This document shows positions 14,998-46,343 of a stretch of 64,000 nucleotides of DNA, in pieces. The position numbers were made by a program, and so were the translations under genes. Location of the stretch: IMG/VR virus record IMGVR_UViG_3300017917_003822, positions 62,001 through 126,000 of that record. The stretch is one strand, 5' to 3'. A model generated the notes under the pieces. The model saw only the letters and a program-made list of their open reading frames with translations, had not been told where the DNA came from and did not search any database. Position 1 is the first letter of the stretch; every line of letters begins with the position of its first letter.

Positions 14998-17900
14998 ATG
15001 GCAAATATAAAACTTAATTTTTTTGGTAAGGATGGGAATCCTCTAAACTTCGACTATATCGGACCAACCGGACCAACTCCTCTTGATTCCAAATTCACAT
15101 ACATAACATCACCATCCGGAGTTTCGAGTAATGGTGACATTATCTTTAATTTTGGGACTAGCACCTTTATTTGGGAATTGTACCCTAGAGATCTTAATAA
15201 TTTCGATCTGACTGCTTGGTATAATGAGGTTAAGGATTTTATCTCGAAGGGAGCTAATGTTTATGTTAATGGCGAAGTTGCAGGACAGCAGAATTTTAAG
15301 TTTAAGATTCAAAGCGTTGCAAAGAACCCTTCTGGGGATTTTATCATCAATGGTCAAAGTGATAATTACGAGGGTCAAAATATAATAAGTCCAAATAATC
15401 AAATCTATTTCACAACGACTTATGAAAATAGGCCAGGTGGTTATTTTAAGGGTAATATCTATTTCGATCCAGTTTCTGCGGGTCTTTATGAGAATGAACA
15501 AATTTTCGTTGTTCAGGAGTTTGAAACTGCTAGCGGCTATCAATATGGATTGCCTCACACTGGGGCAACAGGTTCAACTGGATCACCCAGATGGAGAACC
15601 AGATGGTACAATGATAATTATGGGGAAACCGATGTAACTGACATTATTTTTACTTATGCCATAGAAGATCAACTTGAAGGCGGTGATGGTGAACCTCTAA
15701 TAGTTAATTATCCCAATATGGTACTTCCTGTTGATATTAATTCGGGTGATTATTACCAGAATGGTTTCATACACACAAATCTTGTTAATTCCGAGGCTTT
15801 AGCTATAAATGTTGCTTTAAATGCTTCTGAGGATGCTGAAAACATATATGAGAGAAAGTTAATAGTAGAGGATATTACTACAGGTACACCAGAGAAAATT
15901 ATAGAAATAGATTTCTACGGTCAAATTATAGGTGAGGATGAGAGATTTAAGGTTTTATTAGAGAATCTTGGGCGTGCATTTTATAAGAGCGATTCGGTGA
16001 TCCTAAGAGACCATGATCCGGATGAACCTAGTCCGAACTTTCTTGAGATTAATGAAAAAAGGAAGGAGCTATTAGTAACGGGCGAGGAGATATTTCCCTA
16101 TATAGGTAGTTATAAGGGTTTAATTAATGCTCTTAAATTTTTCGGGTATCAGGATCTTAGAATTAAGGAATATTGGCTAAATTTAAATTATAAAAATCTA
16201 AAATTAGAATCACCTGTACAACAAAATCAATCTTTTCTTAATGCAATAAAATCCCAACAGTCTAAAGGTTATTCATTGAGCTATCAGATTGGTGATATTC
16301 TAGATAACGAGAATAGTGGAAAGTATAGGCTGACCCAGACATATGGACCCGATAAAAACGGTAACTATGTTCTAAATGTCACATCGGAGGATTCATTAAT
16401 CCCAAGCAGAACATATAAGAAAACTGCTCTCTTTGGTTTATACTATGATTTAAATAAAGTTACAGATGATACCGATGCTTTCGGGTATCCGGTTGTTAAT
16501 GACGCTTTTAAATTTACTCAAGAGGAGGTTTTAATTAAGATTTTTGCACTGAAGGAGAGATTAAAGAGAGACTATCTTCCGTTAAATGCAAGAATTATAG
16601 ATATTACCGGAGAAGGTGTTTATTTCACTATCTACAACACCAAGTCATGGACGGATGTTATGGAAAGGTCTGATATAAACTCTGGATTTTATTTTGATTT
16701 TGCACCGAATCCAGATTTTGGATTTTTGGAAGATCTTAGAAATTTCTCAACTAGACCACTGCCATCAGGAATCCAGACACCAAGTTTATATAGCAACTCA
16801 TATCAAACTGAAGTTAATTTTATAGGTGGGACCGGGAGTGCTATAGGATTCAATGGAAATTTCCCCGGTGGAATGACAGGACCAAATCCAACTATATTTG
16901 TAAATTCCGGTAACACGTATCAATTTAATGTTGTTGATAGTGGAAATTTTGGCTATGATTTTTATTTAACAACTGATCCTCTTTTGACTCAGATTGATCC
17001 TTTGGGAGTTATGAACAATGGAGCAACTGGTGGAAATTCGATCACGTGGTACGTTAACCCTGAACAGACGTCCCCGGTTTATTATTATTCCAGTAATAAT
17101 CCTTCATTATTAAATGGAGTCATTACTGTTCTACCTGCTAAATTATCGGATCTTGGTAATATAGTGGATCCATTATCAAATCAGCAGATTTACACCAAGG
17201 AGCAGAATGATTCTATGATGGCAGCAATAGAAAATTTCTATGAACTTAAACAGAATGGAAAAATTCTTGAGCTAGGTGACGATGATTTCGATCCTACTGC
17301 ATATATTGATCCTGTTACAGGTTCTCAGTATCAGCTTCCTTTGGGGATGCCAGTCATACTGGAGCTTGTTCTAGATGTTTGGGAATGGAATGAACTTAAT
17401 ATTAACTGGAACGCCTTAACTATACCAACCTATAAAGTTGGTGACGTTGTACAAGTTAGACAGCTTGATAATTTTTTCTATGGTGTGTTTGGAACTGTTA
17501 CATCAGCAAGTTATTCCACTGGTGAATATACTGTTTTATTAGATCCCCCTTATAATGTACCTCAGAATTTTGCAGAAGCGGATCTTCTCTCATCTATACA
17601 GACCTATAATTTGTTAACATGGGAAAATATAGATTTTTCGAATTCTGTTGAGATCGAGTGGATTGTTAACAAGACGACGACACAATCTGGATCACCTTAT
17701 AATTTTGAATTTAGAGGTCCAATAGCGAGCTTTTATAGGCTTGCACACTTCTTACCCTACACTGGAGAATATAAGGTCATATGCAACATATATGATGCAT
17801 TTAACGCAAAAACTACTGTAATTAAAGATCGAGTTATTAGAGTTGAACCTAAAACGATCGATATTGATTCATGGACCAGATACAGAGAAGCCGAAAGATA

Positions 17901-19917
17901 CCTTTGGGACAATGTTGATAGAGGATGGGATTCATATAACGGAATCTGGGAATATCCAGCTGAGGGTGAAACCATTGAGATTGTTGAAAAATCAATACCT
18001 AGCGAAATCCTAGACTTTGCTACATACGGAAATAAATCGGAGGAGGGACAGAGTCTCTTTGTAAAATCTCCGACTGATCCGATTGGAGCTACTGGAGAAT
18101 TCTCTTTTACCCAATCAATTACTCAAATTTCTGAAGTTTATTCACTGGAAATATTTCCTGGACAATATGGATATGTTAATATCTCCACCGCATCACCTCA
18201 TGGTCTTGTTGATGGTGATGAGGTAACTATATCGGGATCAATTCCTCAACTTAATGGAAGATGGGTTGTTGGTGTTACTGGATCACTTACGACATTTAAA
18301 ATTCCGACTGCTTTTGATCTTTCCTGGAGTGGGATAAATTTAGAAACCTCACCAGTTAACCGATACGTTGCGGATCCTTTAATCTATCCAAATCAAAGGT
18401 TTACTGGAGCTGGTAACGTAACTGTTTTTGTTGGAGGAAGACCGATAGGAACAGCGGAAACTGGTGATACACTTTATAACACAGCTAACGCTATAACATC
18501 GGCTATAAATTCATTACAAACTTATCCTGATTATTTTGCTTCTTGCTTAGATCCTTCATCAGATCCAGTGAAGATATTAATTTCTGCACCTGATGATCTT
18601 GGTTCCGATCAAAATGGGGTTTCTTTTGATGTTGAAGTTTCAGGATCACTAAGTTTAGTTTCTTTATCTCCGTCCTTAACTGGTGGAGTTAGTCCAACCG
18701 AAACATATGTTTACTGGTCGGAGAATGATCCCGTACAACCTAACGAGAATCTTAAATACTGGGGAACGAAGAGACTCAACTGGGAGGTTTTCACAGATAG
18801 CACATGGGAAGATGCTTATGCACATAGCTGGTTTGATTTCGAATTTAACAACGATTGGCTGGGTGGATATGAGCTTCATACTATATTACCTGGTGATTAT
18901 GTTAAGATTAGCACCGCTAATTCGACATATCCATTTCCCGTTGGCGTAACTTTTTCAAGCGGACTGAGTGGTTTAACGTTACAGGAAGTTGCTGACCAGC
19001 TTAATAACTCCAATGAGCCACATATCACTAATTTTTATTATCGACCAATGCCTAGTGAATCGGGTTCTTTGAGTGCTATAGCTGCTCCAATAAACTTGGA
19101 TATAACTAATAATTTCCTGATTAATAGTAACTTCCAACCACCTCCATCATTAAATGGTGGAAGTCAGTTATTGATTGCCCAATTTGGATATACTGGAGGT
19201 ACACCTATTACAACAACAACATCGACGTCGACAACAACAACATCGACAACAACAACATCGACAACATCGACAACAACAACGACCACTATAGCTCCAACAA
19301 CGACGTCAACAACATCGACAACAACTATAGCTCCGACAACGACAACAACAACTGTCGATCCTTGTTTACTTGCAGGTACAGCTAGTATGGTTTATCCTAC
19401 TACAACGACAACAACATCGACATCGACAACAACGACAACAACAACGCCTATAATACTTTGTCAATGTTACACTCTGACTTGTACCCCTGATCCATTCCCT
19501 GCTCCGTACGTCGGATCTACCACTTTCCAATATGTTGACTGTTCCGGTGATACTCAAACAGTTTTCGTTAATGATGGATCACCAATAGACGTATGTGCTC
19601 AGGAAAATAGTGTCATAAGAATCGGAGGGGATCCTGGAACCATTGACATAAGCCCGTTTGATTGTTGCGATACCTCTCTTTACTTAGCATACAGATCGGT
19701 CTCGTCGGATCCGTCTGATGCTTGTGGTTTTATAACCAGCGAAGTATGCTATGTACAAGGATCTTATACCAGGGTATTTAATGATGCCGGAGGAACTTCA
19801 CCGTTCGTAGGAGGGAATGCATATTGGAAAGTCTCCAGAGCAATTGATTCGTATAGTGTCAGTATGCTAATAGACAACTTTGGATATCCGGTAGGTCTGT
19901 CATCACTTTGTTTTTAA
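14998..19917 (+). CDS. Large baseplate wedge protein (gp7/tail-I-like) with accessory domains and C-terminal poly-Thr and Cys-rich regions
   Basis: IFPYIGSYKGLINALKFFGY..IKEYW tail-I/gp7-like motif. Also cupredoxin-like, SH3/KOW-like and PKD-like segments, then Thr tracts. Confidence 0.6.
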   Translation: MANIKLNFFGKDGNPLNFDYIGPTGPTPLDSKFTYITSPSGVSSNGDIIFNFGTSTFIWELYPRDLNNFDLTAWYNEVKDFISKGANVYVNGEVAGQQNFKFKIQSVAKNPSGDFIINGQSDNYEGQNIISPNNQIYFTTTYENRPGGYFKGNIYFDPVSAGLYENEQIFVVQEFETASGYQYGLPHTGATGSTGSPRWRTRWYNDNYGETDVTDIIFTYAIEDQLEGGDGEPLIVNYPNMVLPVDINSGDYYQNGFIHTNLVNSEALAINVALNASEDAENIYERKLIVEDITTGTPEKIIEIDFYGQIIGEDERFKVLLENLGRAFYKSDSVILRDHDPDEPSPNFLEINEKRKELLVTGEEIFPYIGSYKGLINALKFFGYQDLRIKEYWLNLNYKNLKLESPVQQNQSFLNAIKSQQSKGYSLSYQIGDILDNENSGKYRLTQTYGPDKNGNYVLNVTSEDSLIPSRTYKKTALFGLYYDLNKVTDDTDAFGYPVVNDAFKFTQEEVLIKIFALKERLKRDYLPLNARIIDITGEGVYFTIYNTKSWTDVMERSDINSGFYFDFAPNPDFGFLEDLRNFSTRPLPSGIQTPSLYSNSYQTEVNFIGGTGSAIGFNGNFPGGMTGPNPTIFVNSGNTYQFNVVDSGNFGYDFYLTTDPLLTQIDPLGVMNNGATGGNSITWYVNPEQTSPVYYYSSNNPSLLNGVITVLPAKLSDLGNIVDPLSNQQIYTKEQNDSMMAAIENFYELKQNGKILELGDDDFDPTAYIDPVTGSQYQLPLGMPVILELVLDVWEWNELNINWNALTIPTYKVGDVVQVRQLDNFFYGVFGTVTSASYSTGEYTVLLDPPYNVPQNFAEADLLSSIQTYNLLTWENIDFSNSVEIEWIVNKTTTQSGSPYNFEFRGPIASFYRLAHFLPYTGEYKVICNIYDAFNAKTTVIKDRVIRVEPKTIDIDSWTRYREAERYLWDNVDRGWDSYNGIWEYPAEGETIEIVEKSIPSEILDFATYGNKSEEGQSLFVKSPTDPIGATGEFSFTQSITQISEVYSLEIFPGQYGYVNISTASPHGLVDGDEVTISGSIPQLNGRWVVGVTGSLTTFKIPTAFDLSWSGINLETSPVNRYVADPLIYPNQRFTGAGNVTVFVGGRPIGTAETGDTLYNTANAITSAINSLQTYPDYFASCLDPSSDPVKILISAPDDLGSDQNGVSFDVEVSGSLSLVSLSPSLTGGVSPTETYVYWSENDPVQPNENLKYWGTKRLNWEVFTDSTWEDAYAHSWFDFEFNNDWLGGYELHTILPGDYVKISTANSTYPFPVGVTFSSGLSGLTLQEVADQLNNSNEPHITNFYYRPMPSESGSLSAIAAPINLDITNNFLINSNFQPPPSLNGGSQLLIAQFGYTGGTPITTTTSTSTTTTSTTTTSTTSTTTTTTIAPTTTSTTSTTTIAPTTTTTTVDPCLLAGTASMVYPTTTTTTSTSTTTTTTTPIILCQCYTLTCTPDPFPAPYVGSTTFQYVDCSGDTQTVFVNDGSPIDVCAQENSVIRIGGDPGTIDISPFDCCDTSLYLAYRSVSSDPSDACGFITSEVCYVQGSYTRVFNDAGGTSPFVGGNAYWKVSRAIDSYSVSMLIDNFGYPVGLSSLCF
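19210..19446 (+). repeat. Mucin-like poly-Thr/Ser tracts (ACA/ACG/TCG-rich)
   Basis: Encodes TTTTSTSTTTTSTTTTSTTSTTTTTTIAPTTT... and TTTTTTSTSTTTTTTT. Confidence 0.95.
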
Positions 19918-19960
19918 ATGGAATGAATATATAAAAATAGTAATATAAAAGAACAATATA

Positions 19961-20575
19961 ATGGCATCAGCACTCATAACATTAACAACCGCAGGGACTG
20001 GAACTGGACCATTCGACCTTTATTCTAATATTGGTGGATATGCTTCACCCTTCGAATCTGGGGTTGATAAATCATCTCTTGTTTCTGGGTACGTTTCAAA
20101 TTTGGTTCCAAATGGAACAACTGTAATTAGAGTCCAGTCAACAAGTTTACAGTGCACAAATTATGTTGATATCTCGGTAACTGGTATAACCACAACCACA
20201 ACCACCACAACCACAACGGCAGCTCCCACAAATTCAAGCCTAAAAAATAATAGCGGCACATCAATAAGTGGAACTTTTGTTTTTTCCGTTAAAATAGGAT
20301 CTGGTAGTTTTAGTACTTTCTTTTCAGTGTCTACGACAATTGCACCCGGGGCTACTTATAACTTTTTCCAGTCATATTATCCAGGTTCATTCCAAACTAC
20401 CGGTAACACGTTCAGAGTCCAAGTTTTCTCATCTAGTGGAATAACTTCTTCGAATTATATACAGATGTTTGCTGGATCTACTAGTAATATAGGATTCTTT
20501 AGTGGAACGAATCCTGCTACAGCTGAAACTTTTTCTTCTGGTAACCAATTTGCAATTAACATACAATATTATTAA
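19961..20575 (+). CDS. Small virion-associated protein with a poly-Thr linker
   Basis: 204 aa: two beta-rich domains joined by a T10 tract at 20189-20218. Confidence 0.6.
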   Translation: MASALITLTTAGTGTGPFDLYSNIGGYASPFESGVDKSSLVSGYVSNLVPNGTTVIRVQSTSLQCTNYVDISVTGITTTTTTTTTTAAPTNSSLKNNSGTSISGTFVFSVKIGSGSFSTFFSVSTTIAPGATYNFFQSYYPGSFQTTGNTFRVQVFSSSGITSSNYIQMFAGSTSNIGFFSGTNPATAETFSSGNQFAINIQYY

Positions 20576-20580
20576 TAAAC

Positions 20581-20608: not shown

Positions 20609-20628
20609 TAATATCTAAAAGAGATATT

Positions 20629-21594: not shown

Positions 21595-21615
21595 TTTCAA
21601 GCGCTGATTATTAGT

Positions 21616-21646: not shown

Positions 21647-23455
21647 ATGGCAGATATTCAGATAGGTGTAAATCAAGGCGACACCGTTTATTATTTCGAT
21701 CAGAGCGTTGGTTCTGTGGTTTCTAGAGATTGGTTTTTTCCTGGCGGAACTCCAACCGGTGCATCTTCTTTCGGACCAGCGATCCAATATAATAGCGTTA
21801 ATTCAGTCGGATATAATGCTTCTCTGCTTGTTACAGATGCCGCTGGAGTAACTGCTGGAATAACTAAACCTAATATCATCGTCGTTTTTCCGGAGTCCCC
21901 TAATCCGTCCATCTCAGTAACACCTTCTACACTTACCATGGGTATTAATGTAAATTATAGCGTGGTTGGATCGACAGGAACGGGGTTTGTTTCGTATTCT
22001 TGGAATATCCCAGGTCTCGGAGCAACATCGGGACCTTTGCTCTCTTCGGTTTTACAACAGTATAATGATTGGTTTACTCTAACTGGTACATATAGCGGCT
22101 TACCTGGAGCTTCCTATGTTGCCCCAGTTACATTAACAGTTACAACCACTGTGGGAAACACATTTAACGTTAATACAAACGCAACATATTTTAAATATGG
22201 TCCGATTGAGGAGATAAATTATAACGACTCATCATTTCCTTATGGTGTCAGCGGACCCTATTATCTACCAACGTTGATTGGTCCCAATTCTGGAACAATT
22301 GGCCTCGGAGGAAGCAATCCTGTTATAAAAATAGATCAGAGTTATGGTGCTACAGCTTGGAATAATTCTTATTTTCATTCAACAACAGAGAATTGTTACT
22401 TTTGGCCAAATAACGAGGATTTAAATTCGAGTGGATATCTTACTGGCACATTTACCCCGATACAATTTAAGACTATATTTTCAGGTACTGTTCTAAGTTT
22501 AGCTGGGGCTTCTTACACCTCAGATCCTGCTATAAATTCTGGTAATTATATAAAACCTGGATTTATTAGCACCAATTTGAATGACACCTTTTATATAACA
22601 GATTATCCTGCTGGAGGAATCTTAAACCAAGCAACCACTGGAGGTAGAGATTGGAGCGATGATGCTATACGATCCTATTTATCTAACACATACTACCTTT
22701 CTAACTCATCAAAATATATAGAAAATTCTGGATTTGTTTCAAAAGATGTTCCTAGATCAGATTTGGCAACGGTTGCTGACTATCTGAATGGTGGGTATAA
22801 TTTAAACGGCGGATACGGAACAAATAGTCATGGACCCTGTATACCAACTTCATATTTTTTTGAAACTGTTAAATCCGCACCAGGTTTAACTGTGGATGCA
22901 ACAGTAACGGTTCTTTGTGAAAATTCTGGGTCTAATTACTCCTATAATGTTGTTTTATCTTCACCTGGAGGTACCGGTAACAGTCCAGATAAATATCTAA
23001 CGACAGTACAAAGCAACTCTAACGGGAAGGGAATAGCTCAGATCCTTAATGAAGCAACAGCTCTAATTGGTTCGACTAATAAGCTTTCTGATTTCATTAT
23101 TTTCGAAGCTGCTAAAGAATATTGCTGTTATCAGGGTGGTGGAGATTCCTCAAATCCTCAATATGATGCACAGAGCTTCAACGGTCTACGTATATCAGTA
23201 ACCAATCCGATAGTTTCAAATACTGGAACATCTCTAGATTCTGGTGGAAGTATAACTGGGTTGAGTCTAACCTGGGGTCCTAACTGGATATCATCAATAC
23301 AGGGTAGTGGATTCTTCCTGTTTGATGTAAAATTAGCTAGTAGCCCAGGATCTTCGACAACGATGATATCCTGGTTGGGAGTAAAGGAAACTATGCGGAT
23401 AGATTACAATGATCCGACCAGATATTTTAGAGGGTGGAAAATTGGTGGAATATAA
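21647..23455 (+). CDS. PKD/Ig-domain virion protein
   Basis: N-terminal GDTVYYFDQSVGSVVSRDWFFPGGTP PKD-type motif and a second Ig-like segment; Gly/Ser/Thr rich. Confidence 0.6.
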   Translation: MADIQIGVNQGDTVYYFDQSVGSVVSRDWFFPGGTPTGASSFGPAIQYNSVNSVGYNASLLVTDAAGVTAGITKPNIIVVFPESPNPSISVTPSTLTMGINVNYSVVGSTGTGFVSYSWNIPGLGATSGPLLSSVLQQYNDWFTLTGTYSGLPGASYVAPVTLTVTTTVGNTFNVNTNATYFKYGPIEEINYNDSSFPYGVSGPYYLPTLIGPNSGTIGLGGSNPVIKIDQSYGATAWNNSYFHSTTENCYFWPNNEDLNSSGYLTGTFTPIQFKTIFSGTVLSLAGASYTSDPAINSGNYIKPGFISTNLNDTFYITDYPAGGILNQATTGGRDWSDDAIRSYLSNTYYLSNSSKYIENSGFVSKDVPRSDLATVADYLNGGYNLNGGYGTNSHGPCIPTSYFFETVKSAPGLTVDATVTVLCENSGSNYSYNVVLSSPGGTGNSPDKYLTTVQSNSNGKGIAQILNEATALIGSTNKLSDFIIFEAAKEYCCYQGGGDSSNPQYDAQSFNGLRISVTNPIVSNTGTSLDSGGSITGLSLTWGPNWISSIQGSGFFLFDVKLASSPGSSTTMISWLGVKETMRIDYNDPTRYFRGWKIGGI

Positions 23456-28550: not shown

Positions 28551-29456
28551 ATGGCAACTGTAAACATTAATGAAATCTTAGGTTCCGATTCAGTATCGGG
28601 ATCCAGAGTAACCATAAATTCCAATTTTCTTGTTCTTCAGAACTGGATTAATGGTTACGTAAACGTATTTGGAATTGACACCGTAAATGGTATACTTGAT
28701 CTTTCATCAGCTTCGACTGGTAGGGTTCAGGCAAAAATTGGTAGATTTGATTCGATTTCTCTTCCTTCCACAGGAACAGCAACCGCATCTATCAATTCAG
28801 CTGGTAACGCATCATTTGCAAGTGTTCAAACAACAACATTCACAGCATCAGGAGCTGTGGTAGCTTCATCGACCGTTACTTTCGGTTCGGCTTCAGTCTT
28901 TACATCAAATGGTACTGCAACATTCAACGGATCTTTAACAGCAAACTCGTCTCTGAATCTAGGTGCACAAGGTCATATAGTAAGTCAAAATACTACCTAT
29001 CGATCTGGCGCTACAGCAGGAACCGCGTTTCCTTCTAATGCAGCCGGAGGAGGTGGGGTTTATTCTTCTGTTAATTCACCTTATGCAATCACTGGATTGG
29101 AAGACGTTATTTACGCAGAATGTGGACCTACTGGATTCTATATGAAAGTGGTTGATGGAACATCACCAGTTGGTGGAACCTTACCTGCAATTCCGCAGGG
29201 AACAAGAATTACAATAGTGAACACATCAGGAACCACTGGTTATATTCATACAGGTGTTACTGGATCAACTTCATATTACACCGGATTTAACACGAATGCT
29301 TCATATGGAGGATTTGATGCCGGGGGTTTAGTTGTAACATCAGGAAAAGCATATAGATCTTCCGTTGTTCTTCAATGGGAACCTAGAGTTGGACAAGGTC
29401 AGGCTACACAAAATGGATCTTGGGTGGTATTAGGTTCTACAAACATAACAGTATAA
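28551..29456 (+). CDS. Short tail fibre / baseplate-attached protein
   Basis: N-terminal SDSVSGSRVTINSNF (gp9/gp10-like anchor motif) followed by a Ser/Thr/Ala-rich beta-helix-like region. Confidence 0.55.
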   Translation: MATVNINEILGSDSVSGSRVTINSNFLVLQNWINGYVNVFGIDTVNGILDLSSASTGRVQAKIGRFDSISLPSTGTATASINSAGNASFASVQTTTFTASGAVVASSTVTFGSASVFTSNGTATFNGSLTANSSLNLGAQGHIVSQNTTYRSGATAGTAFPSNAAGGGGVYSSVNSPYAITGLEDVIYAECGPTGFYMKVVDGTSPVGGTLPAIPQGTRITIVNTSGTTGYIHTGVTGSTSYYTGFNTNASYGGFDAGGLVVTSGKAYRSSVVLQWEPRVGQGQATQNGSWVVLGSTNITV

Positions 29457-38300: not shown

Positions 38301-40908
38301 TTCTAAAACTCAAATATTCGAGAGGGGTAAACTCGAAACTGAATATGAATATCTGGAGGAGAATTACACCCCAGAAAGAGCTAATGTTTCCAGAATAGTT
38401 CCTTTTATCAATAAGTGGGTTTATACTTCTGGAACTGATGCTAGAGGTAATTCATACAGGCTAAATCTTAGTCCAGCTTTTACTCCGACAAATTTTTCAC
38501 CTAGTATTGATAAGAATATACCCGATTCTAGATATATTACCCATGAGTGGTTCTTATTAGAGGAACCGCCCAGACAGTTCCCTGTCAATGAAATGCAAAA
38601 TCAGAACAGTTATCTTGCGGGTAAGATAGATCTCGACAAAGCAAGAAGTGCTGATCCTGCAGATTCACTTTATTTATCATCATATTTTACTGTTGAACCC
38701 CAGGATTATGCATCGGAATATGTTGATCCGAAAGCATATACCAAGGAGTTATTCACGCCTCTGACATATAATAAATCTAATGGATATTATGAAACTCTTT
38801 TTAGAGGAGTAAAAGTCTATCTAAAGAAAAGATCAAATCTTTCTAATTCGGTTGCGGATTCACTTGACAAATATATTCCACAATACAGAGGATATGAAGA
38901 TTATAAATTTGCTGCAATATTAAGGGCCGTACCTGAGGATGATTCAATTATACAGGATCCGGTAAGTTACGAGGTTATAGAAAATTCCCAACAAAAGTTT
39001 GTTCTTTTTGTTTGTAATGTTCTTATGAGGGATTATAAATCTCTTCCTCTTGGATATACCGGAGGAACAGGAGGAACCCCACAATTGGACTATACTCTTT
39101 TATATTCGTTAAGTAACAAAGAAAGCCTAAAATCTACACTGATCACGGGGGAAAGACTCTATGATATTGCTGACATTAAACTAAGTTCGGCTCTGGATCT
39201 ATCATTATCTTCGGGAAGTATAGTTAATACCACAATAAGTCCTGGTATCATAAATTACATACCTAGCGCAACATACGATACCGACTTGAGAGAGGAAATT
39301 CACACATTCTTTGTGGAAAATTCTGTTGGTGCAACTGCGGGACCAGATCCTACAGGAAGAGGAAGTTTTATTGTTCCTGGTATAGCTGGTAGTCCAACTT
39401 ATCCTTGGCCGATAGGTGTCGGTCCAAATTATATTGAATTTGGAAGAGTAGCAACGGGATCTGCTTCCTACATATTTAATATACCTTTTTCTGCTGCCGA
39501 TCCGGTGACGGTTCCGGTTGGACCTTCTTCCGTTTATCGAAATAATCCAGTTTTTCAAATTCAGGGAGGAGAAAGTTACTATGATTCGATATTGCAGAGG
39601 ACTTCTGTTGCTGACATTGCTAGAAGAGTTAATTCAAGCTCAACATACATTAGATATCGAACTTATGTTTGGGATCCAATTAACTCAGTTACTGTTGAAA
39701 GAAATAATGATTTTGAGCTTTATATAGAAAAACCAACAAGACTAGTTAAAACAAGAGGGACTAGAACTTCTAAGTTTTATGGCGGACCACAAACAATAGG
39801 AGAATCTACGCCAACCGGATATATTATGCAATCCAATCAAAATCTACCGTCCACACTTCTGAGATATTCGGGTGGATATGAGCCTATATTTAGAAAAGTG
39901 GTTCATTTTGATAATGATAAATCCGATAAGATTTACGGATACAATCAGATGGATCTGTCCTTTAGAAATTGTAATTTTGCACCAAATAAATATTATTTTG
40001 GGGTATCTAGAAACCTACAATTTACTAAAGTTTCACTGGACAATAATATTCTCTCGTTGAGTCAAAATTTACCTGAAGGACCAGTTTATCCTCTTGTTGG
40101 TCAGTCACCAATATGGAAGAAGGATTTTAATTTATTCTCTTCATCTTGGGATCCTGGATATTATCAGCAATTTACGGGTGCAGAAACTTATGTTGATGTA
40201 GCAGGTACTAGATCAATGAAGGAATTTAAATCTTTCTTTGGTTCTAAAATAATGAAAACCCCTGACCCTGTACAGTTTAATAATTACATAACATTACAGA
40301 TTTCTAGAACAACCGGTTCTTCCGATGTTGCTTCTGTAAATGAAATGATAAATTCTTATTTGGCTCCGATACAGTCAATAACCCCTTCAAACTCGTCTTC
40401 CGGTATAGGTAGTGTTGGACCATATCTTTCTGGAGTTGATTATAATAAGTTGGATCTATCTATATTCCCTGATGCTGAGTTAATTTGGCAATATTTTCCA
40501 GAGACTAATTCAATTAGGGGTATAATAAGACTTGATAGAATGTTAAGGAGATATCTTCTTAATTCAGGTATAAAACAGACTTTTATAGACAATATCATAT
40601 CTGATTTTGGTGTTGGTGATCCGGATTCCATAAACGATGATGTAAATGCTTATATTGATTTAAACGTTTCCCCGTTATATCAGGGTAATATATTTGATAT
40701 GTACGTCAAGAAGTCGTCTGAACCTCTGAACCAAAATTACATGGTTAGAGGGGACATAGCAAATTCCGAAAAATATAAGCTGGAATTTTTCAATGAACCA
40801 AACTATAAATTAACAAAAAATAGGGATTTAATTTACGATTTTGAGTATAATCTAGAAACAAATTATAACTACTCATTATTATTTAATCTTGGAATAACTA
40901 AAATATAA
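35392..40908 (+). CDS. Very large structural protein with a CBM5/12-like module
   Basis: 1838 aa; WSNTSAYASGDIVLYNDIYY...W near 37350-37490 is a chitin-binding type 3 signature. Confidence 0.55.
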   Translation: MSGAKLFDYNSSFAVIRTNPKLTGNLKITVESNNRVSFNSLSVNSTLSNDRFKNFNITGENSFALDVFNFFDKGTTPASAIFQVGEFTRGSREPAKQFGEQYDFFYASGASALADKNYSESFSYFAPLWIKNEIPDYFVIFKVPGAVSYPYSTNQTTISSSLKYKLVQNYDSPEVFKITYGRDPSGNDVVYSAGDIFTGSSNYNSYTILSGSGIVVLFDELANLPLVNDVESLFNSKIIPNLSVVKTFDIGENSKIGKYIRSIFNDKQFSKSPMEVSWGPNSYTYFNGVSVSDGIFTKKGEILTSYYTSDSSDKMMDFESYMTSGFSRNNIICPNLLNLEFLFDDPDSDMYTINRYMGFYVSKNDMASFRLNGNFFYEYRNLEGNNDSPKPSRNSFGYYYDNNSYGVTASTGVRLFYEEATGFLPGSNDVNLLNPHKLFYITDKENNFYTLKRDEGYLVPGGNSPAYSYGPFNSTTGEFSATGSTGATMGSFVIQDNFVDLLSFTGTDVKIATVPGVLASEAGKAYCDVEFLKPYDLNKPLTFKIYWPNGRRTEGSRKYDIVQSEDLSAILVWVAGSYYSTGSTFYFNASAGTTEQIATGLSSLFDIVNPTTWESGSNLNTSIIRLKDSGTYGNEAYSISVFDDYDSFTSRYRGNWSNTSAYASGDIVLYNDIYYLTNTNISSPSPGSFNNNPSISGWSRYSTFSNSGYIKINGIDASQITSNVHFNGGTRTKDTRVTFPIEYDGFVKPGSFIKTTEGYSIITSVTRYVDSPQRDSVTNKITGFNNFSYTKVANIADYIPNDLSRRNTLTYPRIELGSDRSFNVYGTPKLNAGVFTFFDTKEFDFDFWSSNYGYTPTPETYKYFQLEVGASGSISPGIPYLVKQGQANYNGSLYIEGSIFYGVTGSSFFTDASPNLYKELVVFPAQYSDISYDPILTNYGNQIGYNGDLNAFNGFIGIQSLDPQPIPASASKTQIFERGKLETEYEYLEENYTPERANVSRIVPFINKWVYTSGTDARGNSYRLNLSPAFTPTNFSPSIDKNIPDSRYITHEWFLLEEPPRQFPVNEMQNQNSYLAGKIDLDKARSADPADSLYLSSYFTVEPQDYASEYVDPKAYTKELFTPLTYNKSNGYYETLFRGVKVYLKKRSNLSNSVADSLDKYIPQYRGYEDYKFAAILRAVPEDDSIIQDPVSYEVIENSQQKFVLFVCNVLMRDYKSLPLGYTGGTGGTPQLDYTLLYSLSNKESLKSTLITGERLYDIADIKLSSALDLSLSSGSIVNTTISPGIINYIPSATYDTDLREEIHTFFVENSVGATAGPDPTGRGSFIVPGIAGSPTYPWPIGVGPNYIEFGRVATGSASYIFNIPFSAADPVTVPVGPSSVYRNNPVFQIQGGESYYDSILQRTSVADIARRVNSSSTYIRYRTYVWDPINSVTVERNNDFELYIEKPTRLVKTRGTRTSKFYGGPQTIGESTPTGYIMQSNQNLPSTLLRYSGGYEPIFRKVVHFDNDKSDKIYGYNQMDLSFRNCNFAPNKYYFGVSRNLQFTKVSLDNNILSLSQNLPEGPVYPLVGQSPIWKKDFNLFSSSWDPGYYQQFTGAETYVDVAGTRSMKEFKSFFGSKIMKTPDPVQFNNYITLQISRTTGSSDVASVNEMINSYLAPIQSITPSNSSSGIGSVGPYLSGVDYNKLDLSIFPDAELIWQYFPETNSIRGIIRLDRMLRRYLLNSGIKQTFIDNIISDFGVGDPDSINDDVNAYIDLNVSPLYQGNIFDMYVKKSSEPLNQNYMVRGDIANSEKYKLEFFNEPNYKLTKNRDLIYDFEYNLETNYNYSLLFNLGITKI

Positions 40909-40911
40909 AAT

Positions 40912-42450
40912 ATGCCTGTTACTAATATACAATCTTTAAATTATGGTGACTCACAATCACAGATCATCGACAAAATAAACTACAATTTTGACGAGATTGT
41001 CGAGGCTCATGGGGGAACTCAGGGTATTACCGGACCTACCGGGGATGTTGGACCTATTGGTTCGAGAGGTCCCATCGGATTTACAGGAGGTACCGGGGTT
41101 AGAGGTACTAGATGGTTTGTTGACTTAGTCCAGCCATCGGGAACTTTTAACACTGTTTCAGAGGGTGACTTTTGGATAGACGCCAGTGACGGAAGAATTT
41201 TTATTTTTACCGAATCTGGATGGACAAACACTGGATATACATTAGCTTCAGGAGGTAATATATTTAAACAGGAGGACTCATATTTCTCATCGGGTGGAAC
41301 CGGATCAGCTATTCTTTTTGACCAGATACTACCTCAGAATTATCTCATGATTATAGCTGACAAAGTACCAGAGTCGGGCGTACTGAATGAAAATTTGTCT
41401 AAATTTGTAATTTCCACAGATACCACTGTTAACGATTCACCGGTATTGGAGTTCTCCAAGAGTAATGTTGAATCTGGGGATATCTCTGATTACTCTCAGC
41501 ACCCTATCTTCAGATGGAAAAATTTCGACCCATTAAATAATTCTCTGGTTTTAGAAATACCCGGCGGATCTTTCGTAATAGGTTCCTCTGGAGGATTCCA
41601 ATCAACATTTGACTTTTTAACGGTACAGACACCATCAGCAACTTCCATTTCTTATGGTGCAACTTCAGGATCTGGTATATTTTCTACGGGAGGGTTTGAA
41701 TTAAATACCAGCGGACAATTTAAATTTAGAAGTTCTTTTTTTAATGTCACTGGTGGATCTGGTTATATTTCCGCGCCTGTTAATTTAACGGCAAGTCTTA
41801 CCCCGACAACCCCCTCAATCTTCACTTTTAGTGGTGGAACTGCAGGTTTCAGAACTTCAAGATCCGGTGACAGTTTTAATACGTTGTCAAACTCCGTTTA
41901 TGCTCTTTCGTTAGAATCATCTTCCGATCGTGAATTTTTCATAAACACAAAGGGAAAAATAAGAACAAAAAAAGCGGAGACCTCGATTTCCTATGCATCG
42001 ACTACACCTGGAGCTACCAGTACAGTATCGTCTAATTTGGTTAACTGGTACCTTATTTCAAGAACTTCTACTCCTGTGGCATCCTCAGTTTTACAATCAG
42101 GTAACACCATAGTCATAAATCCGGTTATACCAACCAGCAGCTATGTTGGTATTGGAGTTTATAGTGCAGCTGATTACTCTTGGGGAACGACTGGTGGACT
42201 TGAACCTGGTCAATCCATAGATATTAATGTCCACTATAGTCCAAACACAACTCAAAGGGGTTTTAGTGAGGGCTTCCGTTATATTGGTAAAGGAGCAACC
42301 AGTGGGGACGTATCAAATGTAATCACTTTACCTTTCGCAGCAACTAACGTGGACTTCACTTTAGCTAGAGGAGTTACATCCAGTAATATGACCGTTTTTT
42401 ATAGAGCTTATGGTTCTACTGGTGGATCTGGTGGATCTTTTGTTGTCTGA
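40912..42450 (+). CDS. Collagen-containing tail fibre, paralogue 1
   Basis: GDSQSQIIDKINYNF anchor, (GXY)10, then GDFWID. Confidence 0.75.
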   Translation: MPVTNIQSLNYGDSQSQIIDKINYNFDEIVEAHGGTQGITGPTGDVGPIGSRGPIGFTGGTGVRGTRWFVDLVQPSGTFNTVSEGDFWIDASDGRIFIFTESGWTNTGYTLASGGNIFKQEDSYFSSGGTGSAILFDQILPQNYLMIIADKVPESGVLNENLSKFVISTDTTVNDSPVLEFSKSNVESGDISDYSQHPIFRWKNFDPLNNSLVLEIPGGSFVIGSSGGFQSTFDFLTVQTPSATSISYGATSGSGIFSTGGFELNTSGQFKFRSSFFNVTGGSGYISAPVNLTASLTPTTPSIFTFSGGTAGFRTSRSGDSFNTLSNSVYALSLESSSDREFFINTKGKIRTKKAETSISYASTTPGATSTVSSNLVNWYLISRTSTPVASSVLQSGNTIVINPVIPTSSYVGIGVYSAADYSWGTTGGLEPGQSIDINVHYSPNTTQRGFSEGFRYIGKGATSGDVSNVITLPFAATNVDFTLARGVTSSNMTVFYRAYGSTGGSGGSFVV

Positions 42451-42456
42451 TATATA
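42449..42456 (+). promoter_or_regulatory. Putative late promoter GATATATA
   Basis: Overlaps the TGA stop of fibre 1; 33 nt before fibre 2. Confidence 0.55.
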
Positions 42457-42481
42457 CAATAATTATTCCACTTAATCTCAA

Positions 42482-44167
42482 ATGGCAGAATTAAAATTAC
42501 TAAGAATAGAGGAGGGTGACTCTCAGAAGACTTTAACAGATAAGGTAAATGTAAACTTTGCCAATCTGATAATCTTTGATGGTGGTCCCTATGGTAGAAT
42601 TGGAGAAAAAGGTCCAGAGGGAGCTAAAGGTGCCACCGGGCCGATTGGATCGTATGGAGATCGAGGGGTTCGTGGTACAATTTGGACTGTGGGTCCCTGC
42701 CAGCCAAGCCCAACAGGATCTATAGTCGGTGATTTTTGGTTGAATACAGATAATTCAAATTATGTTTATCGTTTCGGATCGGATAGAAATTGGTCACAAT
42801 ACGGTTTTAATTTAAAATCTGAGGATCTTTTCAGGGTATACGGACCACTTTTGAACTCAGCTGGTACCACTAATAAATACGGTTATTTTCTATCATCCAA
42901 TACTCCGATAGATTATACTGTTGTTATTACCGATAATCCATCTATGGATAGCGGAACTGAATTTTCACCAAACCCAATATTCAATCCACAATATTCAAAG
43001 TTTGTTATATCCGTGGACGGAACAAATCCTAATAAAAACATATTAGAATTCACAAAATCTGATTATGATGATACCTCGTTCACTGAAGGAACTCCTAGAT
43101 TTTATTGGAATCAGGGTCCTACTGCAGACAGAGGAAATTATGGGTTATCCTTCAAAAATTATGACCGGACAAATTTTAGCCTACCTAATTCAACTCTGAG
43201 ATTCGAGTCAACTTCGTCATCTATATCCCTTGATTCAGTCGGATTCAATCTTTATCTAAATAGTCAACAGTTATTTACTGTTAATTCATCAGGTGAAATT
43301 TATTTTGATTTCAATAACGGTACTGCTCTGTTTTCAACAAGAAATATATCATATAGCCCAAGTGGGTTTAATTTAACTACTGGATTAAATGTTTATTCAG
43401 AGTCAAGTGATCAAAATCCTCCACTGCATCTTATATCAGGATCTGCTGGAACCGGAAATTTAAGATACCTTTATAACTCGACGCCAAGTAATTCAGCATT
43501 TTTATTTAGAGTAGTTCAGGGAACAGGTACGTTATTTTCCACCTTTGGTGCGGGATATACTTTCATGGATAAGAGGGTTAATTCTATACAATCCCCACAA
43601 AATTTAACCCAAACTGCTTCAGGAACATATGGGTCAACTACCGTAAATTGGACAGCAGTTATACCATCCATAGCTGTAAATACAACGTCGGGTGATTATT
43701 TTTATGCAAATAATGGATCTGATTTTGTTATTGAAAGATCACCATCAGCTTCTCCCGGTGACAGAGGCATCTGTATATGGACTCCAGCAACAGGTGGAAC
43801 CGTTGGCTTTAACGGAGGATGGTTAAATTTGGTGGAGGATCAAGAGGCTATCACATTTAGAGTACATAGCACAAATCCGGGATCAACAGCAGATTGTTTT
43901 AGATATCTTGGATTGAATACGAGCCAATCCCCAAATATTATACCATCAACGTTTAATTCTGGTGTAAATGAGGCAGTTGCAATTTTACCTGCTGGTGAAT
44001 ATGCTTCCACTGCCGAATTTACGGTTGTTAACGTAAGGGGTGCAACTGGAGGTGCCGGTGGAACAGGAGGAACTCGAAGATGGTACAAAGTATTTTATTC
44101 TGCGTGGGGCGGTAATTTATCAAATACCTATTGTGGGGTTTTAACAACAAGTAATTCAATAGCTTAA
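42482..44167 (+). CDS. Collagen-containing tail fibre, paralogue 2
   Basis: GDSQKTLTDKVNVNF anchor, (GXY)10, then GDFWLN. Confidence 0.75.
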   Translation: MAELKLLRIEEGDSQKTLTDKVNVNFANLIIFDGGPYGRIGEKGPEGAKGATGPIGSYGDRGVRGTIWTVGPCQPSPTGSIVGDFWLNTDNSNYVYRFGSDRNWSQYGFNLKSEDLFRVYGPLLNSAGTTNKYGYFLSSNTPIDYTVVITDNPSMDSGTEFSPNPIFNPQYSKFVISVDGTNPNKNILEFTKSDYDDTSFTEGTPRFYWNQGPTADRGNYGLSFKNYDRTNFSLPNSTLRFESTSSSISLDSVGFNLYLNSQQLFTVNSSGEIYFDFNNGTALFSTRNISYSPSGFNLTTGLNVYSESSDQNPPLHLISGSAGTGNLRYLYNSTPSNSAFLFRVVQGTGTLFSTFGAGYTFMDKRVNSIQSPQNLTQTASGTYGSTTVNWTAVIPSIAVNTTSGDYFYANNGSDFVIERSPSASPGDRGICIWTPATGGTVGFNGGWLNLVEDQEAITFRVHSTNPGSTADCFRYLGLNTSQSPNIIPSTFNSGVNEAVAILPAGEYASTAEFTVVNVRGATGGAGGTGGTRRWYKVFYSAWGGNLSNTYCGVLTTSNSIA

Positions 44168-44168
44168 T

Positions 44169-46343
44169 ATGCATTTCAATACTAAATACATTTTTCAGGG
44201 TGACGATAGAGGTGAAATCGCCAGCAAGATCAATTACAACTTTGATCAGATAATTTCATTTGCTGTTGGTCCTGATGGACATATTGGCCCAAGAGGAGCT
44301 ACTGGATTATATGGTCCTGCAGGATTTAAGGGATTAACAGGAGCTACTGGAGCGAGAGGAACGATGATATTTAAACAACCAACTCAACCTCTTCCTTCTG
44401 AAACACAGGAATATGACATTTGGGTGGATAATTCTTCAGGTGAGGGTGACGTGAATGTTTTAGGAGCTACCGGAACTTGGAATTATTCAGGTTATTCTTT
44501 TTTTAGTTCCTCGTATTTTTCAACCTATTCTTGGATACTTGGACCAGCTGGATCCACTGATAAATATGTTGTTGGTATTAAAGATATAGCAAATGCTCCT
44601 ATCACTAATCTGGTTATAAGCGACGGTAACCCAACATCATCAGTTTCAAATCCAAATAATTCTAAGGTTCTTGTTGCCACGCAAGATCAGACGTCAACAC
44701 CAATATTTACTCTATCTAAAACTGGAGCTATTTCTTCTGGAGTACCTTCTTTTTATTGGGAGTCTACTGGATCCAATCGTAATCTTGTTTATAGGTCAAC
44801 GGGTGATCTTGAGATAATATCTCAGTTGAGGATGTCTATAGATTCAGGCCTGGCAAGAACTCTTTTATTTGGTAATAATGTTAATATAACAGCCTCGAGT
44901 TTTACTGTGGGTGGATCTGGTGATTTCCAACTAGCAGCAAACACAACTGTTGGTAGTGGTGGTATATTTAATGTACAGTCTCAAAATTTACTGATCGCCT
45001 CCTCATATTTCACTAGTGCTGATCCTTTGACTATATACGCAGCATCAGGAAATTATGTTCTCAATGATGTCCCAGTTTCTGCTGGATTAAACTCCGGTAT
45101 AACAATATCAACAACATCCACGGCAAATGATAGTTTTTCGATAAATGATCTAACTGGAAATCCGATTTTATCGGGTAAACCATTTGGATCGGTTGATAGC
45201 GGGAAACACTCACAAACAATATTTGGCTCAACCGGTGGATTTACCGGAGGTACCGCCGGTCCATTTTCATACCATGTAAGAAGGGCTTCTCAAGTTACTA
45301 AAAGCACGGTTACAGTTCTATCAGCTGCTCGATATCTTTCAACCACAGCAGGGACAGATACCCTAAATAACGTTTTCGATCTAACAGATCTGTCTCTTTG
45401 GAATTCAAATGTTATAGTCGTTACACCTACATTGTATACGAATAGCGGACAAGCTGGGGTTTATTTGAGAATACCAGCATCATATTTGAATTCATTAGAG
45501 CCAGTTTATAATACGGGTCGAACCAATATTTATAGAATTCTTTTAAACTCACTAGATTCTAGTTTATCTGCTAGGTTTATTAATGGTTTTGTTTTCAGTT
45601 ACACCAATTACGGTTCAGGAGGACTAACTTCAACGTCGATTTTAAATTACTTTAATTTACCAACTCCGATTTCTATTAATAGTTATTGCCAGTATATCGA
45701 TCTCCATTGGCTAGGAATATCAAACTCTTCCAATCTTAATCCGAGACTTTTCTATAAAGCATGTAACGGTGTCGGTGGATATTTAGAATTAACCAACTTA
45801 AATAGTATAGGATCGGAACAACCTATTACATCCGGGTCATCTCCAACCTCTGGTACAGGAAGCCCGAGTTTTGACGACGGTAGCTTCATTTCAAGTGGTG
45901 GTGGATCGTTTTTCAATCCATTCTGTCCAACTCCAGATATGTTAATTTATTTAGGTGATGGTAATTGGATTGCTGCTGGGGAGCTTAATATCGGAGATAT
46001 AGTATATACGCTTCATGAGCAAACTAACCAGTGGGATTATTATAAAGTTTCTTCAGTTGACAGAGCCACTCAGCCTGTTATCTCTGCAATTATTGGGGGC
46101 AAAGAAATTAAGGTATCAGAGCACCATAGATTCCTCACTGTTGATAATGAGTATGTTTCCATTAACGACCTTCAGATTGGTTCCGAACTTAGAACGATCG
46201 ACGGTTCAGTTAAATTAGAATCTAAAACAAATATAGGAGAGACTGAAGTTGTTAAAATAGAAATTGAAAATGCACATACGTATGTTCTGGAGGGTGTAAT
46301 CTCACACAACGTAAAAATAAGTCAGTTTATAGCAGCACCATAA
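44169..46343 (+). CDS. Collagen-containing tail fibre, paralogue 3, with a C-terminal Hint domain
   Basis: GDDRGEIASKINYNF anchor, (GXY)10, then YDIWVD; C-terminal CPTPDM...SHN. Confidence 0.75.
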   Translation: MHFNTKYIFQGDDRGEIASKINYNFDQIISFAVGPDGHIGPRGATGLYGPAGFKGLTGATGARGTMIFKQPTQPLPSETQEYDIWVDNSSGEGDVNVLGATGTWNYSGYSFFSSSYFSTYSWILGPAGSTDKYVVGIKDIANAPITNLVISDGNPTSSVSNPNNSKVLVATQDQTSTPIFTLSKTGAISSGVPSFYWESTGSNRNLVYRSTGDLEIISQLRMSIDSGLARTLLFGNNVNITASSFTVGGSGDFQLAANTTVGSGGIFNVQSQNLLIASSYFTSADPLTIYAASGNYVLNDVPVSAGLNSGITISTTSTANDSFSINDLTGNPILSGKPFGSVDSGKHSQTIFGSTGGFTGGTAGPFSYHVRRASQVTKSTVTVLSAARYLSTTAGTDTLNNVFDLTDLSLWNSNVIVVTPTLYTNSGQAGVYLRIPASYLNSLEPVYNTGRTNIYRILLNSLDSSLSARFINGFVFSYTNYGSGGLTSTSILNYFNLPTPISINSYCQYIDLHWLGISNSSNLNPRLFYKACNGVGGYLELTNLNSIGSEQPITSGSSPTSGTGSPSFDDGSFISSGGGSFFNPFCPTPDMLIYLGDGNWIAAGELNIGDIVYTLHEQTNQWDYYKVSSVDRATQPVISAIIGGKEIKVSEHHRFLTVDNEYVSINDLQIGSELRTIDGSVKLESKTNIGETEVVKIEIENAHTYVLEGVISHNVKISQFIAAP
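45924..46310 (+). other. Hint / bacterial intein-like (BIL) domain, 129 aa
   Basis: Cys1 (CPTPDM), block B-like VSEHHRF, block F/G VVKIEIENAHTYVLEGVISHN; the +1 residue is Val. Confidence 0.9.

Follow-up and report, generated by a model that had tools for sequence, protein, structure and literature searches.

Introduction

SgtA of Clostridioides difficile attaches O-GlcNAc to the Thr of G-P-T and G-A-T collagen-like triplets in BclA3 (PMC7157674). The enzyme is cytoplasmic and metal-dependent, comprises a GT-A domain (residues 1-260) followed by four TPRs, and is encoded next to the G-x-T repeat gene. A long repeat is not needed in vitro: SgtA transfers beta-O-GlcNAc from UDP-GlcNAc to the Thr of a single GATG or GPTG in a 17-mer peptide, and it also accepts Ser (PMC7157674, Tables 1-2). 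In BclA of Bacillus anthracis and in the cuticle collagen of Riftia, Thr at the Y position of G-x-T triplets carries O-glycans; both are long triple-helical repeats of cells or animals. Other protein glycosyltransferases act on other substrates. SunS and ThuS (PDB 7msn, 7msp, 7msk) modify small bacteriocin precursors on Cys or Ser in an inter-helix loop, and SunS is prophage-encoded. GmaR of Listeria monocytogenes (PDB 22ao; PMC9638930) is a cytoplasmic flagellin O-GlcNAc transferase and an anti-repressor, for which no G-x-T-G sequon is known. Phages can also glycosylate their own virions: mycobacteriophage glycosyltransferases decorate the C-termini of capsid and tail-tube subunits with O-linked glycans (Freeman et al. 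2023, cited in PMC12619734). The mycobacteriophage glycosyltransferase genes lie beside the structural genes.

Here we examined a 64,000-nucleotide stretch (the window; positions 62,001 to 126,000 of IMG/VR record IMGVR_UViG_3300017917_003822) of a giant freshwater phage. A preliminary description had noted that G-x-T-G (hereafter G.TG) and G-x-T-[AS] recur as isolated motifs in unrelated tail proteins, and had proposed that these proteins convergently accumulated an acceptor site for Thr O-glycosylation by a phage glycosyltransferase (GT), with a possible link to gmhA and heptose. The observation held in full, whereas the interpretation is supported only in part. As in the SgtA system, the acceptor-like motif is G-x-T-G with small x and the phage encodes a predicted GT-A plus TPR enzyme. 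However, most of the motifs are single copies in loops of globular beta-rich tail proteins rather than in a long collagen-like region, and the predicted enzyme is encoded about 32 kb from the last fibre gene.

Results

The motif excess is real, Thr-specific and acts at the protein level. Comparison with composition-shuffled proteins had been proposed beforehand as a test, and its outcome is clear. The 12 tail ORFs between positions 14,998 and 46,343 hold 51 G.TG against 7.9 expected (Poisson 1.5e-24), about six times too many, and G.TG is by far the most enriched of all 8000 a.bc patterns. The neighbouring patterns G.TA (13 versus 4.0) and G.TS (17 versus 9.5) are less enriched, and G.SG (10 versus 9.8), G.NG and G.DG show no excess. 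The 26 other ORFs of the window hold three G.TG. The counts of 13 G.TG and 7 G.T[AS] given in the preliminary description for the 1358-aa protein reproduce exactly, and HTGATGSTGS, NNGATGG, GYTGGTGG, GTTGSYGLTGG and GATGGAGGTGG are all present.

The DNA pattern GGNNNNACNGG occurs 51, 0 and 3 times in codon frames 0, 1 and 2, and five times on the other strand. Gly codon use at the motif matches overall use, indicating that the constraint is on the protein. Local composition does not account for the excess, because shuffling within blocks of 10-50 residues still gives only 8-11 motifs (z = 13-16). Nor do collagen-like runs: 39 of the 51 G.TG, in 36 separate clusters, lie outside any run of four or more G-X-Y triplets, and only 12 of 81 G.T[GAS] lie within such runs. 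The only runs of any length are 11 triplets at aa 34-67 of the three fibres, whose scores against the Pfam collagen profile PF01391 (18.6 and 20.7) are below the cut-off of 27.2. Paralogy is likewise insufficient, as BLASTP finds no similarity among the proteins except over the first ~200 residues of the three fibres. The features are listed in Table 1.

Table 1. Motif-bearing ORFs, conserved sites and other features considered (window positions unless stated; expected counts from composition shuffles)
Position	Strand	Feature	G.TG	G.T[AS]	Conservation and other evidence
14998..19917	+	1639-aa tail protein	9 (1.06 expected)	1 G.TS	In 47 orthologues, sites 22, 192, 610 and 675 kept in 72-91% with x free
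15061..15072	+	Conserved site GPTG, aa 22 of ORF 14998			Kept in 91% of 47 orthologues
16825..16836	+	Conserved site GGTG, aa 610 of ORF 14998			G1 98%, T 72% (otherwise Ser), G4 100%
19961..20575	+	204-aa Thr/Ser-rich protein	0	2 G.TS	
21647..23455	+	602-aa tail protein	2	3	
23483..27559	+	1358-aa tail protein, predicted multi-beta-propeller	13 (1.08 expected)	7 (1.67 expected)	AF2 model pLDDT 83, pTM 0.85; fold matches BT4663, DDB1, CylK and PorZ propellers
23879..23890	+	Conserved site GGTG, aa 133 of the propeller protein			G 100%, T 100%, G 94% in 94 homologues; no T->S
23918..23929	+	Conserved site GVTG, aa 146			Kept in 96%; x is V, A or S
24584..24595	+	Conserved site GATG, aa 368			Kept in 99%; conserved but low-confidence segment (model residues 318-404, pLDDT < 50)
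25328..25339	+	Conserved site GPTG, aa 616			Kept in 90%; coil at pLDDT about 90
26468..26479	+	Conserved site GVTG, aa 996			Kept in 94%; x is I, V, S, L or A
28551..29456	+	301-aa tail protein	3	2	
29476..31674	+	732-aa tail protein	2	1 G.TA	
31696..35361	+	1221-aa tail protein	2	3	
35392..40908	+	1838-aa tail protein	4	2 G.TA	
40912..42450	+	512-aa fibre	7	5	Four G.TG in an 11-triplet collagen-like run at aa 35-67
42482..44167	+	561-aa fibre paralogue (N-terminus)	3	2 G.TA	
44169..46343	+	724-aa fibre paralogue (N-terminus)	6	2	
46615..47463		282-aa conserved neighbour			Membrane/coiled-coil protein
50220..50768		Tube ORF	0		
51718..52320	+	GmhA-type sedoheptulose-7-phosphate isomerase			E = 1e-59 to PDB 1x94 and 7.5e-57 to 2i22; HFAEEL and QE.H kept; not linked to the motif
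Contig 140,013-141,293		426-aa predicted GT-A + TPR glycosyltransferase			About 14 kb beyond the window end on the 270,629-bp contig

The excess is a property of the whole phage clade. The 95 propeller homologues have a median of 12 G.TG against 1.2 expected. Five columns are kept in at least 80% of homologues down to 38% identity with x free, and there are 72 rarer columns, indicating that the motif is under selection, with a conserved core of sites plus turnover. The 47 orthologues of ORF 14998 behave in the same way. In 37 related loci, fibre-side ORFs give 648 G.TG versus 95 expected, and baseplate-side ORFs 14 versus 46.5. By contrast, the T4 fibres (6 versus 3.1) and five distant relatives, LR756500, LR756504, Lak-B5, MaF61 and pT24 (together 14 versus 7.8), lack it. 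The major capsid protein shows only a weak excess that is not Thr-specific (1.8 versus 0.54, with G.SG 1.5 versus 0.51), and its motifs are internal. The tube and the sheath-like protein have no motif. This pattern does not match mycobacteriophage virion glycosylation, in which the glycans sit at subunit C-termini, whereas the motif here is internal and defined.

Where Thr is replaced and both Gly are kept, the replacement is Ser (46) and not Val/Ile (5), against a baseline of 713:330 (Fisher p = 5e-4), which suggests that the hydroxyl matters more than beta-branching. In the AF2 model of the propeller protein, 67 of 80 motif residues (84%) are coil against 54% overall, next to strands and at pLDDT mostly 82-94, so that the motifs lie in ordered loops. 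The flanks do not resemble the Asp-box beta-hairpin (S-x-D-x-G-x-T-W), as they show no S/D at -4 or -2 and Gly rather than W after Thr.

Nothing in the window is a GT. However, a 426-aa protein encoded outside it has a Pfam Glycos_transf_2 domain plus TPR repeats, with DTGSxD and IDADD conserved. In its AF2 model (pLDDT 87) the GT-A domain spans residues 39-202 and helical repeats residues 214-424. The best profile hits in PDB are GmaR (5.6e-11; IVKxEE, DTGSxD and IDADx motifs shared), SunS (3.5e-8) and ThuS (4.7e-7). The top six Foldseek hits are SunS/ThuS over the full length (E = 2.5e-15 to 6e-14, 290-402 aligned columns, sequence identity only about 15%), and the next fold class is at E >= 1e-7. 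The best structural relatives are thus protein glycosyltransferases. Orthologues occur in all 11 clade contigs of at least 200 kb that carry the wedge gene, making this a core gene of the clade, and tblastn finds no homologue in the motif-poor outgroups. The gene lies at contig 140.0 kb, whereas the last fibre gene ends at 108.3 kb; small ORFs aside, its neighbours are those of a nucleotide-metabolism block (RNR, adenylate kinase and topoisomerase) and not the precursor and export genes of a glycocin locus.

Relatives of the predicted enzyme are coupled to G-x-T repeat proteins. Of 80 bacterial loci holding its closest relatives (33-46% identity), 22 hold a collagen-like (G-x-T)n ORF, within 500 bp in 11, within 2 kb in 17 and within 5 kb in 21. 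In those ORFs Y is Thr in 65% and Ser in 2%, and X is Ala in 43% and Pro in 23%. The same holds in phage Tunturi_5, where the GT is 3.7 kb from a tail fibre with 66 G.TG versus 4.6, and in LR756502, where a collagen-like ORF has 36 versus 3.4.

The proposed gmhA/heptose link, which would recall autotransporter heptosylation by TibC/AAH with ADP-heptose, is not supported. GmhA is genuine, but it is absent from the syntenic site in about half of the related loci, whose fibres keep the excess (about 121 versus 19, against 109 versus 24 with GmhA). Within contig positions 42-147 kb, a part of the contig that leaves out about 165 kb, we saw no heptosyltransferase and no other ADP-heptose pathway gene.

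Discussion

We propose that G-[A/V/S/T/L/I/P/G]-T-G is the acceptor site (sequon) of a phage-encoded cytoplasmic protein O-glycosyltransferase, the GT-A + TPR protein described above. We hold this reading with moderate confidence, as somewhat more likely than not; the circumstantial support for a GT is strong. What stands on evidence is that enzymes of this family are encoded next to collagen-like (G-x-T)n proteins, and that the published SgtA, of the same architecture, glycosylates single GATG or GPTG sites in short peptides. For this phage lineage the remainder, including any sugar on the Thr and the activity of the enzyme, is inferred from sequence and predicted structure alone. In this view the sequon is no longer confined to collagen-like runs, and single copies sit in ordered loops between beta-strands of at least ten non-homologous distal tail and fibre proteins. 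The newly made proteins would be glycosylated in the host cytoplasm before or during assembly, giving the outer tail a glycan coat, with stability, solubility, protease resistance or shielding as the likely benefit. Heptose via GmhA is unlikely to be the donor route.

Several findings sit uneasily with this proposal. The predicted GT is not encoded beside its supposed substrates. SgtA accepts Ser in vitro, yet the tail proteins show no G.SG excess, and the phage's own 987-aa collagen-like fibre is built of GSS/GTS triplets (G.SG 164 versus 19.7, G.TG 4 versus 6.5). The motifs lie in well-ordered regions of folded propellers, to which access for an enzyme is unproven, and the contrast between a clade with GT and motif and outgroups without either rests on few independent events. 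The idea of convergent accumulation is only half right: the best sites are ancient and inherited (90-100% kept in homologues down to 38% identity), whereas others turn over.

The main rival, possible but in our view less likely, is a purely structural motif: a lineage-typical loop, beta-bulge or short PPII element that closes or links beta-strands without any enzyme. Gly would serve backbone geometry and close packing against aromatic residues, and Thr a side-chain to main-chain hydrogen bond. The near-invariance of both glycines and the Thr at the oldest sites, and the coil next to strands in a confident model, are what such an element would also show. Moreover, Y/F alternate at -8, -6 and -4 and aromatics follow at +6 to +9; motifs often come in pairs 8-17 residues apart (27 pairs within 20 aa against 15.1 by random placement); and x is small or aliphatic and never charged or aromatic, as for a semi-buried position. 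However, a generic turn motif should not be confined to one phage lineage, nor span about ten unrelated folds while missing from T4 fibres and five related phages. Turns normally tolerate Ser, Asn or Asp, yet these variants show no excess. The motif also keeps arising at new columns, often in lineage-specific insertions, and its residue preferences copy those of the collagen-like partners of the GT family.

Two further readings are unlikely. The GT might modify only true collagen-like runs, either the 11-triplet N-terminal runs of the three fibres or other proteins, the dispersed motifs being harmless remnants or by-products of triplet insertion and decay (slippage or recombination with collagen-like segments). 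Tandem mini-runs do exist outside collagen regions (GATGSTG, GYTGGTGG, GATGGAGGTGG and GSTGGFTGGTAG), several window-specific motifs sit in insertions relative to homologues (propeller sites 811, 939 and 1044), and all known or inferred partners of the GT family are long repeat proteins; but neutral remnants would not be conserved at 90-100% for G, T and G with x free, 36 clusters lie outside triplet runs and codons vary. Equally doubtful is recognition by another trans-acting factor (an assembly chaperone, a different modification such as phosphorylation, or a shared docking partner in the baseplate periphery) or a glycan-binding role of the tail proteins themselves: lineage specificity across non-homologous proteins points to a shared partner, the hydroxyl is the conserved feature and aromatic residues are enriched nearby as in sugar-binding sites, but no candidate factor was found in the window, where the 282-aa conserved neighbour 46615-47463 is a membrane/coiled-coil protein, and the specific match to the GT family's partner proteins is left unexplained.

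Glycosylation of G-x-T triplets in long collagen-like repeats is already described; what differs here is the dispersal of single motifs over folded tail proteins. If our reading is right, which at its broadest we judge about as likely as not, an abundant clade of freshwater jumbo phages would coat its outer tail with sugars through a defined four-residue sequon that escaped from collagen-like repeats into loops of many unrelated proteins. More broadly, GT-A + TPR glycosyltransferases paired with (G-x-T)n proteins would form a widespread, so far undescribed protein-glycosylation module in Chlamydiota, Verrucomicrobiota, Planctomycetota, Proteobacteria and large phages.

Results

The 270,629-bp viral contig (IMGVR_UViG_3300017917_003822, JGI Ga0192394_135162), of which the window covers positions 62,001–126,000, belongs to a T4-like jumbo myovirus. 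Baseplate genes are followed by a long row of large tail and fibre genes, then by a sheath-like ORF, a tube ORF and replication genes. The nearest database relatives are uncultured huge phages, Lak phages, and phages of Flavobacterium and Tenacibaculum. The contig also carries HSP20 and HSP70 genes, and on these grounds alone it probably belongs to the freshwater 'moraphages' of Bacteroidota (PMC12619734).

Features of the window and of the contig beyond it (window coordinates unless marked; L084 is a stretch of the same contig)
Feature	Coordinates	Strand	Description
Baseplate genes	54-14441
Tail and fibre genes	14998-46343		Twelve ORFs
Propeller protein	23483-27559		1358 aa
Segment of the propeller protein	24551-24811		aa 357-443; many invariant residues, including GATGWNF; pLDDT < 50 in the AF2 model
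PhoH-like gene	27561-28316	-	On the opposite strand, in the middle of the tail-fibre gene row
Conserved protein	46615-47463		282 aa; N-terminal membrane segment and coiled coil; immediately after the last fibre gene in all related phages
Sheath-like ORF	47473-50205		910 aa, conserved
Mini-intein-like (Hint) domain	49786-50178		aa 772-902 of ORF 47473-50205
Tail-tube ORF	50220-50768		phrog_45
GmhA-type isomerase	51718-52320		Inside the replication module, between RuvC-like and gp32-like genes
Fusion protein	58253-60313		686 aa; RNA-ligase-like domain (aa 26-224) and NMN-adenylyltransferase-like nucleotidyltransferase domain (aa 480-526)
Collagen-like fibre gene	62021-64000, continuing to about 64984 on the contig (L084:11707-14670)	+	987 aa; typical fibre N-terminus, C-terminal chaperone-like domain
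Public gene call at the collagen-like fibre gene	62179-63888	opposite	569 aa
Glycos_transf_2 + TPR protein	contig 140,013-141,293		426 aa

The dispersed G-x-T-G motif is real. The preliminary description had counted about 13 G.TG and about 7 G.T[AS] in the 1358-aa protein; the numbers are exactly 13 and 7, against 1.08 and 1.67 expected. Over the twelve ORFs of the tail region there are 51 G.TG against 7.9 expected (P=1.5e-24), making this the strongest of all gapped tripeptides. The excess is specific for Thr: G.SG occurs 10 times against 9.8, while G.TA and G.TS show a weaker excess. The x position is Ala first. Runs of Thr are also enriched in the tail proteins (TTT 37 versus 8.2; T.TT 35 versus 8.2), for example TPITTTTSTST in ORF 14998, and these are possibly linkers or further O-glycosylation regions.

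Several trivial origins can be excluded. The corresponding DNA pattern occurs only in the coding frame, with ordinary Gly codon use, which rules out a DNA-level signal. Local composition or low complexity is rejected by block shuffles, since shuffling inside 10-residue blocks still leaves z=12.8. Collagen runs are not the whole cause, because 39 of the 51 motifs, in 36 clusters, lie outside any run of four G-X-Y triplets. Hidden paralogy is likewise rejected: by BLASTP the proteins are not detectably related, apart from the N-termini of the three collagen-bearing fibres. Finally, the flanks do not fit an Asp-box or Reg_prop repeat signature.

The motif is a property of the lineage and is under selection. 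In 95 full-length homologues of the propeller protein (38–88% identity), the median is 12 G.TG against 1.2 expected. Five sites keep G, T and G in 90–100% of sequences, while x varies freely and Ser almost never replaces Thr. Another 78 alignment columns carry the motif in fewer sequences, so that sites are also gained and lost. Forty-seven orthologues of ORF 14998 behave the same way. Moreover, across 37 related loci the fibre-side ORFs have 648 motifs against 95 expected, and the baseplate-side ORFs 14 against 46.5. By contrast, T4 fibres (6 versus 3.1) and the wedge regions of LR756500, LR756504, Lak-B5, MaF61 and pT24 (14 versus 7.8 together) show no comparable excess, and the motif is therefore not a generic property of tail fibres. 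The x residue is small or aliphatic; charged, aromatic, Asn and Asp residues are strongly avoided. Where Thr is replaced, the replacement is Ser rather than Val or Ile (46:5 against a baseline of 713:330, p=5e-4).

Not every structural protein shows the Thr-specific excess. The sheath-like and tube proteins have no motif. The capsid protein, considered as a further substrate, shows only a weak excess that is not Thr-specific. The 987-aa collagen-like fibre is built of GSS (88) and GTS (61) triplets, with 164 G.SG against 19.7 and 4 G.TG against 6.5, and its use of Ser rather than Thr at Y contrasts with all other tail proteins. The sheath-like ORF has a mini-intein-like (Hint) domain at its C-terminal end, which matches DnaE intein 7qil at E=1.1e-5. 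That ORF lies just before the tail-tube ORF and so may be the tail sheath; an intein in a sheath-like structural gene would be unusual.

An AF2 model of residues 40–1200 of the propeller protein (pLDDT 83, pTM 0.85) shows tandem beta-propellers. Of the motif residues 84% are coil, against 54% overall; they lie next to strands, mostly at pLDDT 82–94. This is evidence on predicted secondary structure and not on exposure of the Thr side chain. The flanks show alternating Tyr/Phe before the motif and Gly/Ser/Ala after it. AF2 could not place one segment with many invariant residues (aa 357–443), which may be an interface with another virion protein.

No glycosyltransferase (GT) was found in the window by searches against Pfam, NCBIfam or PHROGs, even at lax thresholds, and the conserved 282-aa protein that follows the last fibre gene, examined as a possible enzyme, is a membrane plus coiled-coil protein that could be lysis- or assembly-related. 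However, walking along the contig revealed a Glycos_transf_2 + TPR protein beyond the window, with conserved DTGSxD and IDADD motifs. Among solved structures, a profile of 25 orthologues hits only protein glycosyltransferases and TPR designs: GmaR at 5.6e-11, SunS at 3.5e-8 and ThuS at 4.7e-7. Its AF2 model (pLDDT 87) matches SunS and ThuS over the full length at E about 1e-15, eight orders of magnitude better than teichoic-acid GTs. The gene is present in all eleven clade contigs of at least 200 kb that carry the wedge gene, and tblastn finds no homologue in the motif-poor outgroups. A word-based homologue search with the GT profile returned only clade orthologues, and the contigs of four distant GT representatives were short or uninformative.

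Relatives of this GT are coupled to G-x-T proteins. In phage Tunturi_5 the homologue lies 3.7 kb from a tail fibre made of (GPT/GAT/GIT)n runs, with 66 G.TG against 4.6. In LR756502 the homologue lies near a collagen-like ORF with 36 against 3.4. Of 80 bacterial loci holding the closest relatives (33–46% identity), 22 contain a collagen-like ORF with a huge G.TG excess, which lies within 500 bp of the GT in 11, within 5 kb in 21, and further away in only one. Many of the loci are from environmental Chlamydiota, Verrucomicrobiota, Planctomycetota and Proteobacteria, and the arrangement looks like a widespread, apparently undescribed gene pair analogous to sgtA–bclA3. In those ORFs Thr fills 65% of Y positions and Ser 2%, and Ala (43%) and Pro (23%) lead at X. 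These are the same preferences as those of the dispersed phage motif. In a 42-kb podovirus from Manatee Spring (MW202524.1, positions 3147–11978), a cluster of three glycosyltransferase and two methyltransferase genes lies right after the major capsid gene, an arrangement reminiscent of virion-glycosylating mycobacteriophages.

The preliminary description had also pointed to gmhA and heptose. The window does encode a genuine, GmhA-type phosphoheptose isomerase with its catalytic residues intact. However, about half of the related phages lack it at the syntenic site and keep the motif excess, no partner heptose-pathway genes were seen nearby, and no heptosyltransferase was seen in the part of the contig that was read, which leaves out about 165 kb. 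The heptose idea is therefore not supported.

Discussion

The proposal that G-x-T-G is an acceptor site for Thr O-glycosylation by a phage GT is thus supported in part. The motif excess, its conservation and the pairing of the GT family with G-x-T proteins are direct observations; that the phage enzyme is active, and that it places a sugar on the tail proteins, is inferred from sequence and from predicted structure, and no sugar has been observed. We consider the sequon reading somewhat more likely than not. The published C. difficile enzyme SgtA has the same GT-A + TPR architecture, lies next to bclA3, and adds O-GlcNAc to Thr in peptides with a single GATG or GPTG (PMC7157674). Thr glycosylation of G-x-T-G by GT-A + TPR enzymes is thus already known; what would be new here is its dispersal into globular tail proteins of a phage clade. 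Several findings sit uneasily with this reading. The GT is far from the fibre genes; SgtA also accepts Ser, yet G.SG is not enriched in the tail proteins; and the phage's own collagen-like fibre uses GSS/GTS triplets.

A purely structural motif is the main alternative. The invariant glycines fit a structural element equally well, but on balance we think this explanation unlikely. Two minor alternatives are less likely still. Even if the sequon reading is wrong, the motif is an unusually sharp, lineage-specific structural signature that needs explaining.

Defined sequons for bacterial or phage O-glycosylation are rare, and virion glycosylation has been shown experimentally mainly for mycobacteriophages. 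If the sequon reading is right, it gives a short, predictive sequon and a named enzyme, both accessible in E. coli without culturing the phage. It would also give a way to predict glycan-shielded regions of receptor-binding proteins in a very abundant group of environmental phages, and a general rule linking one GT family to G-x-T proteins across several bacterial phyla.
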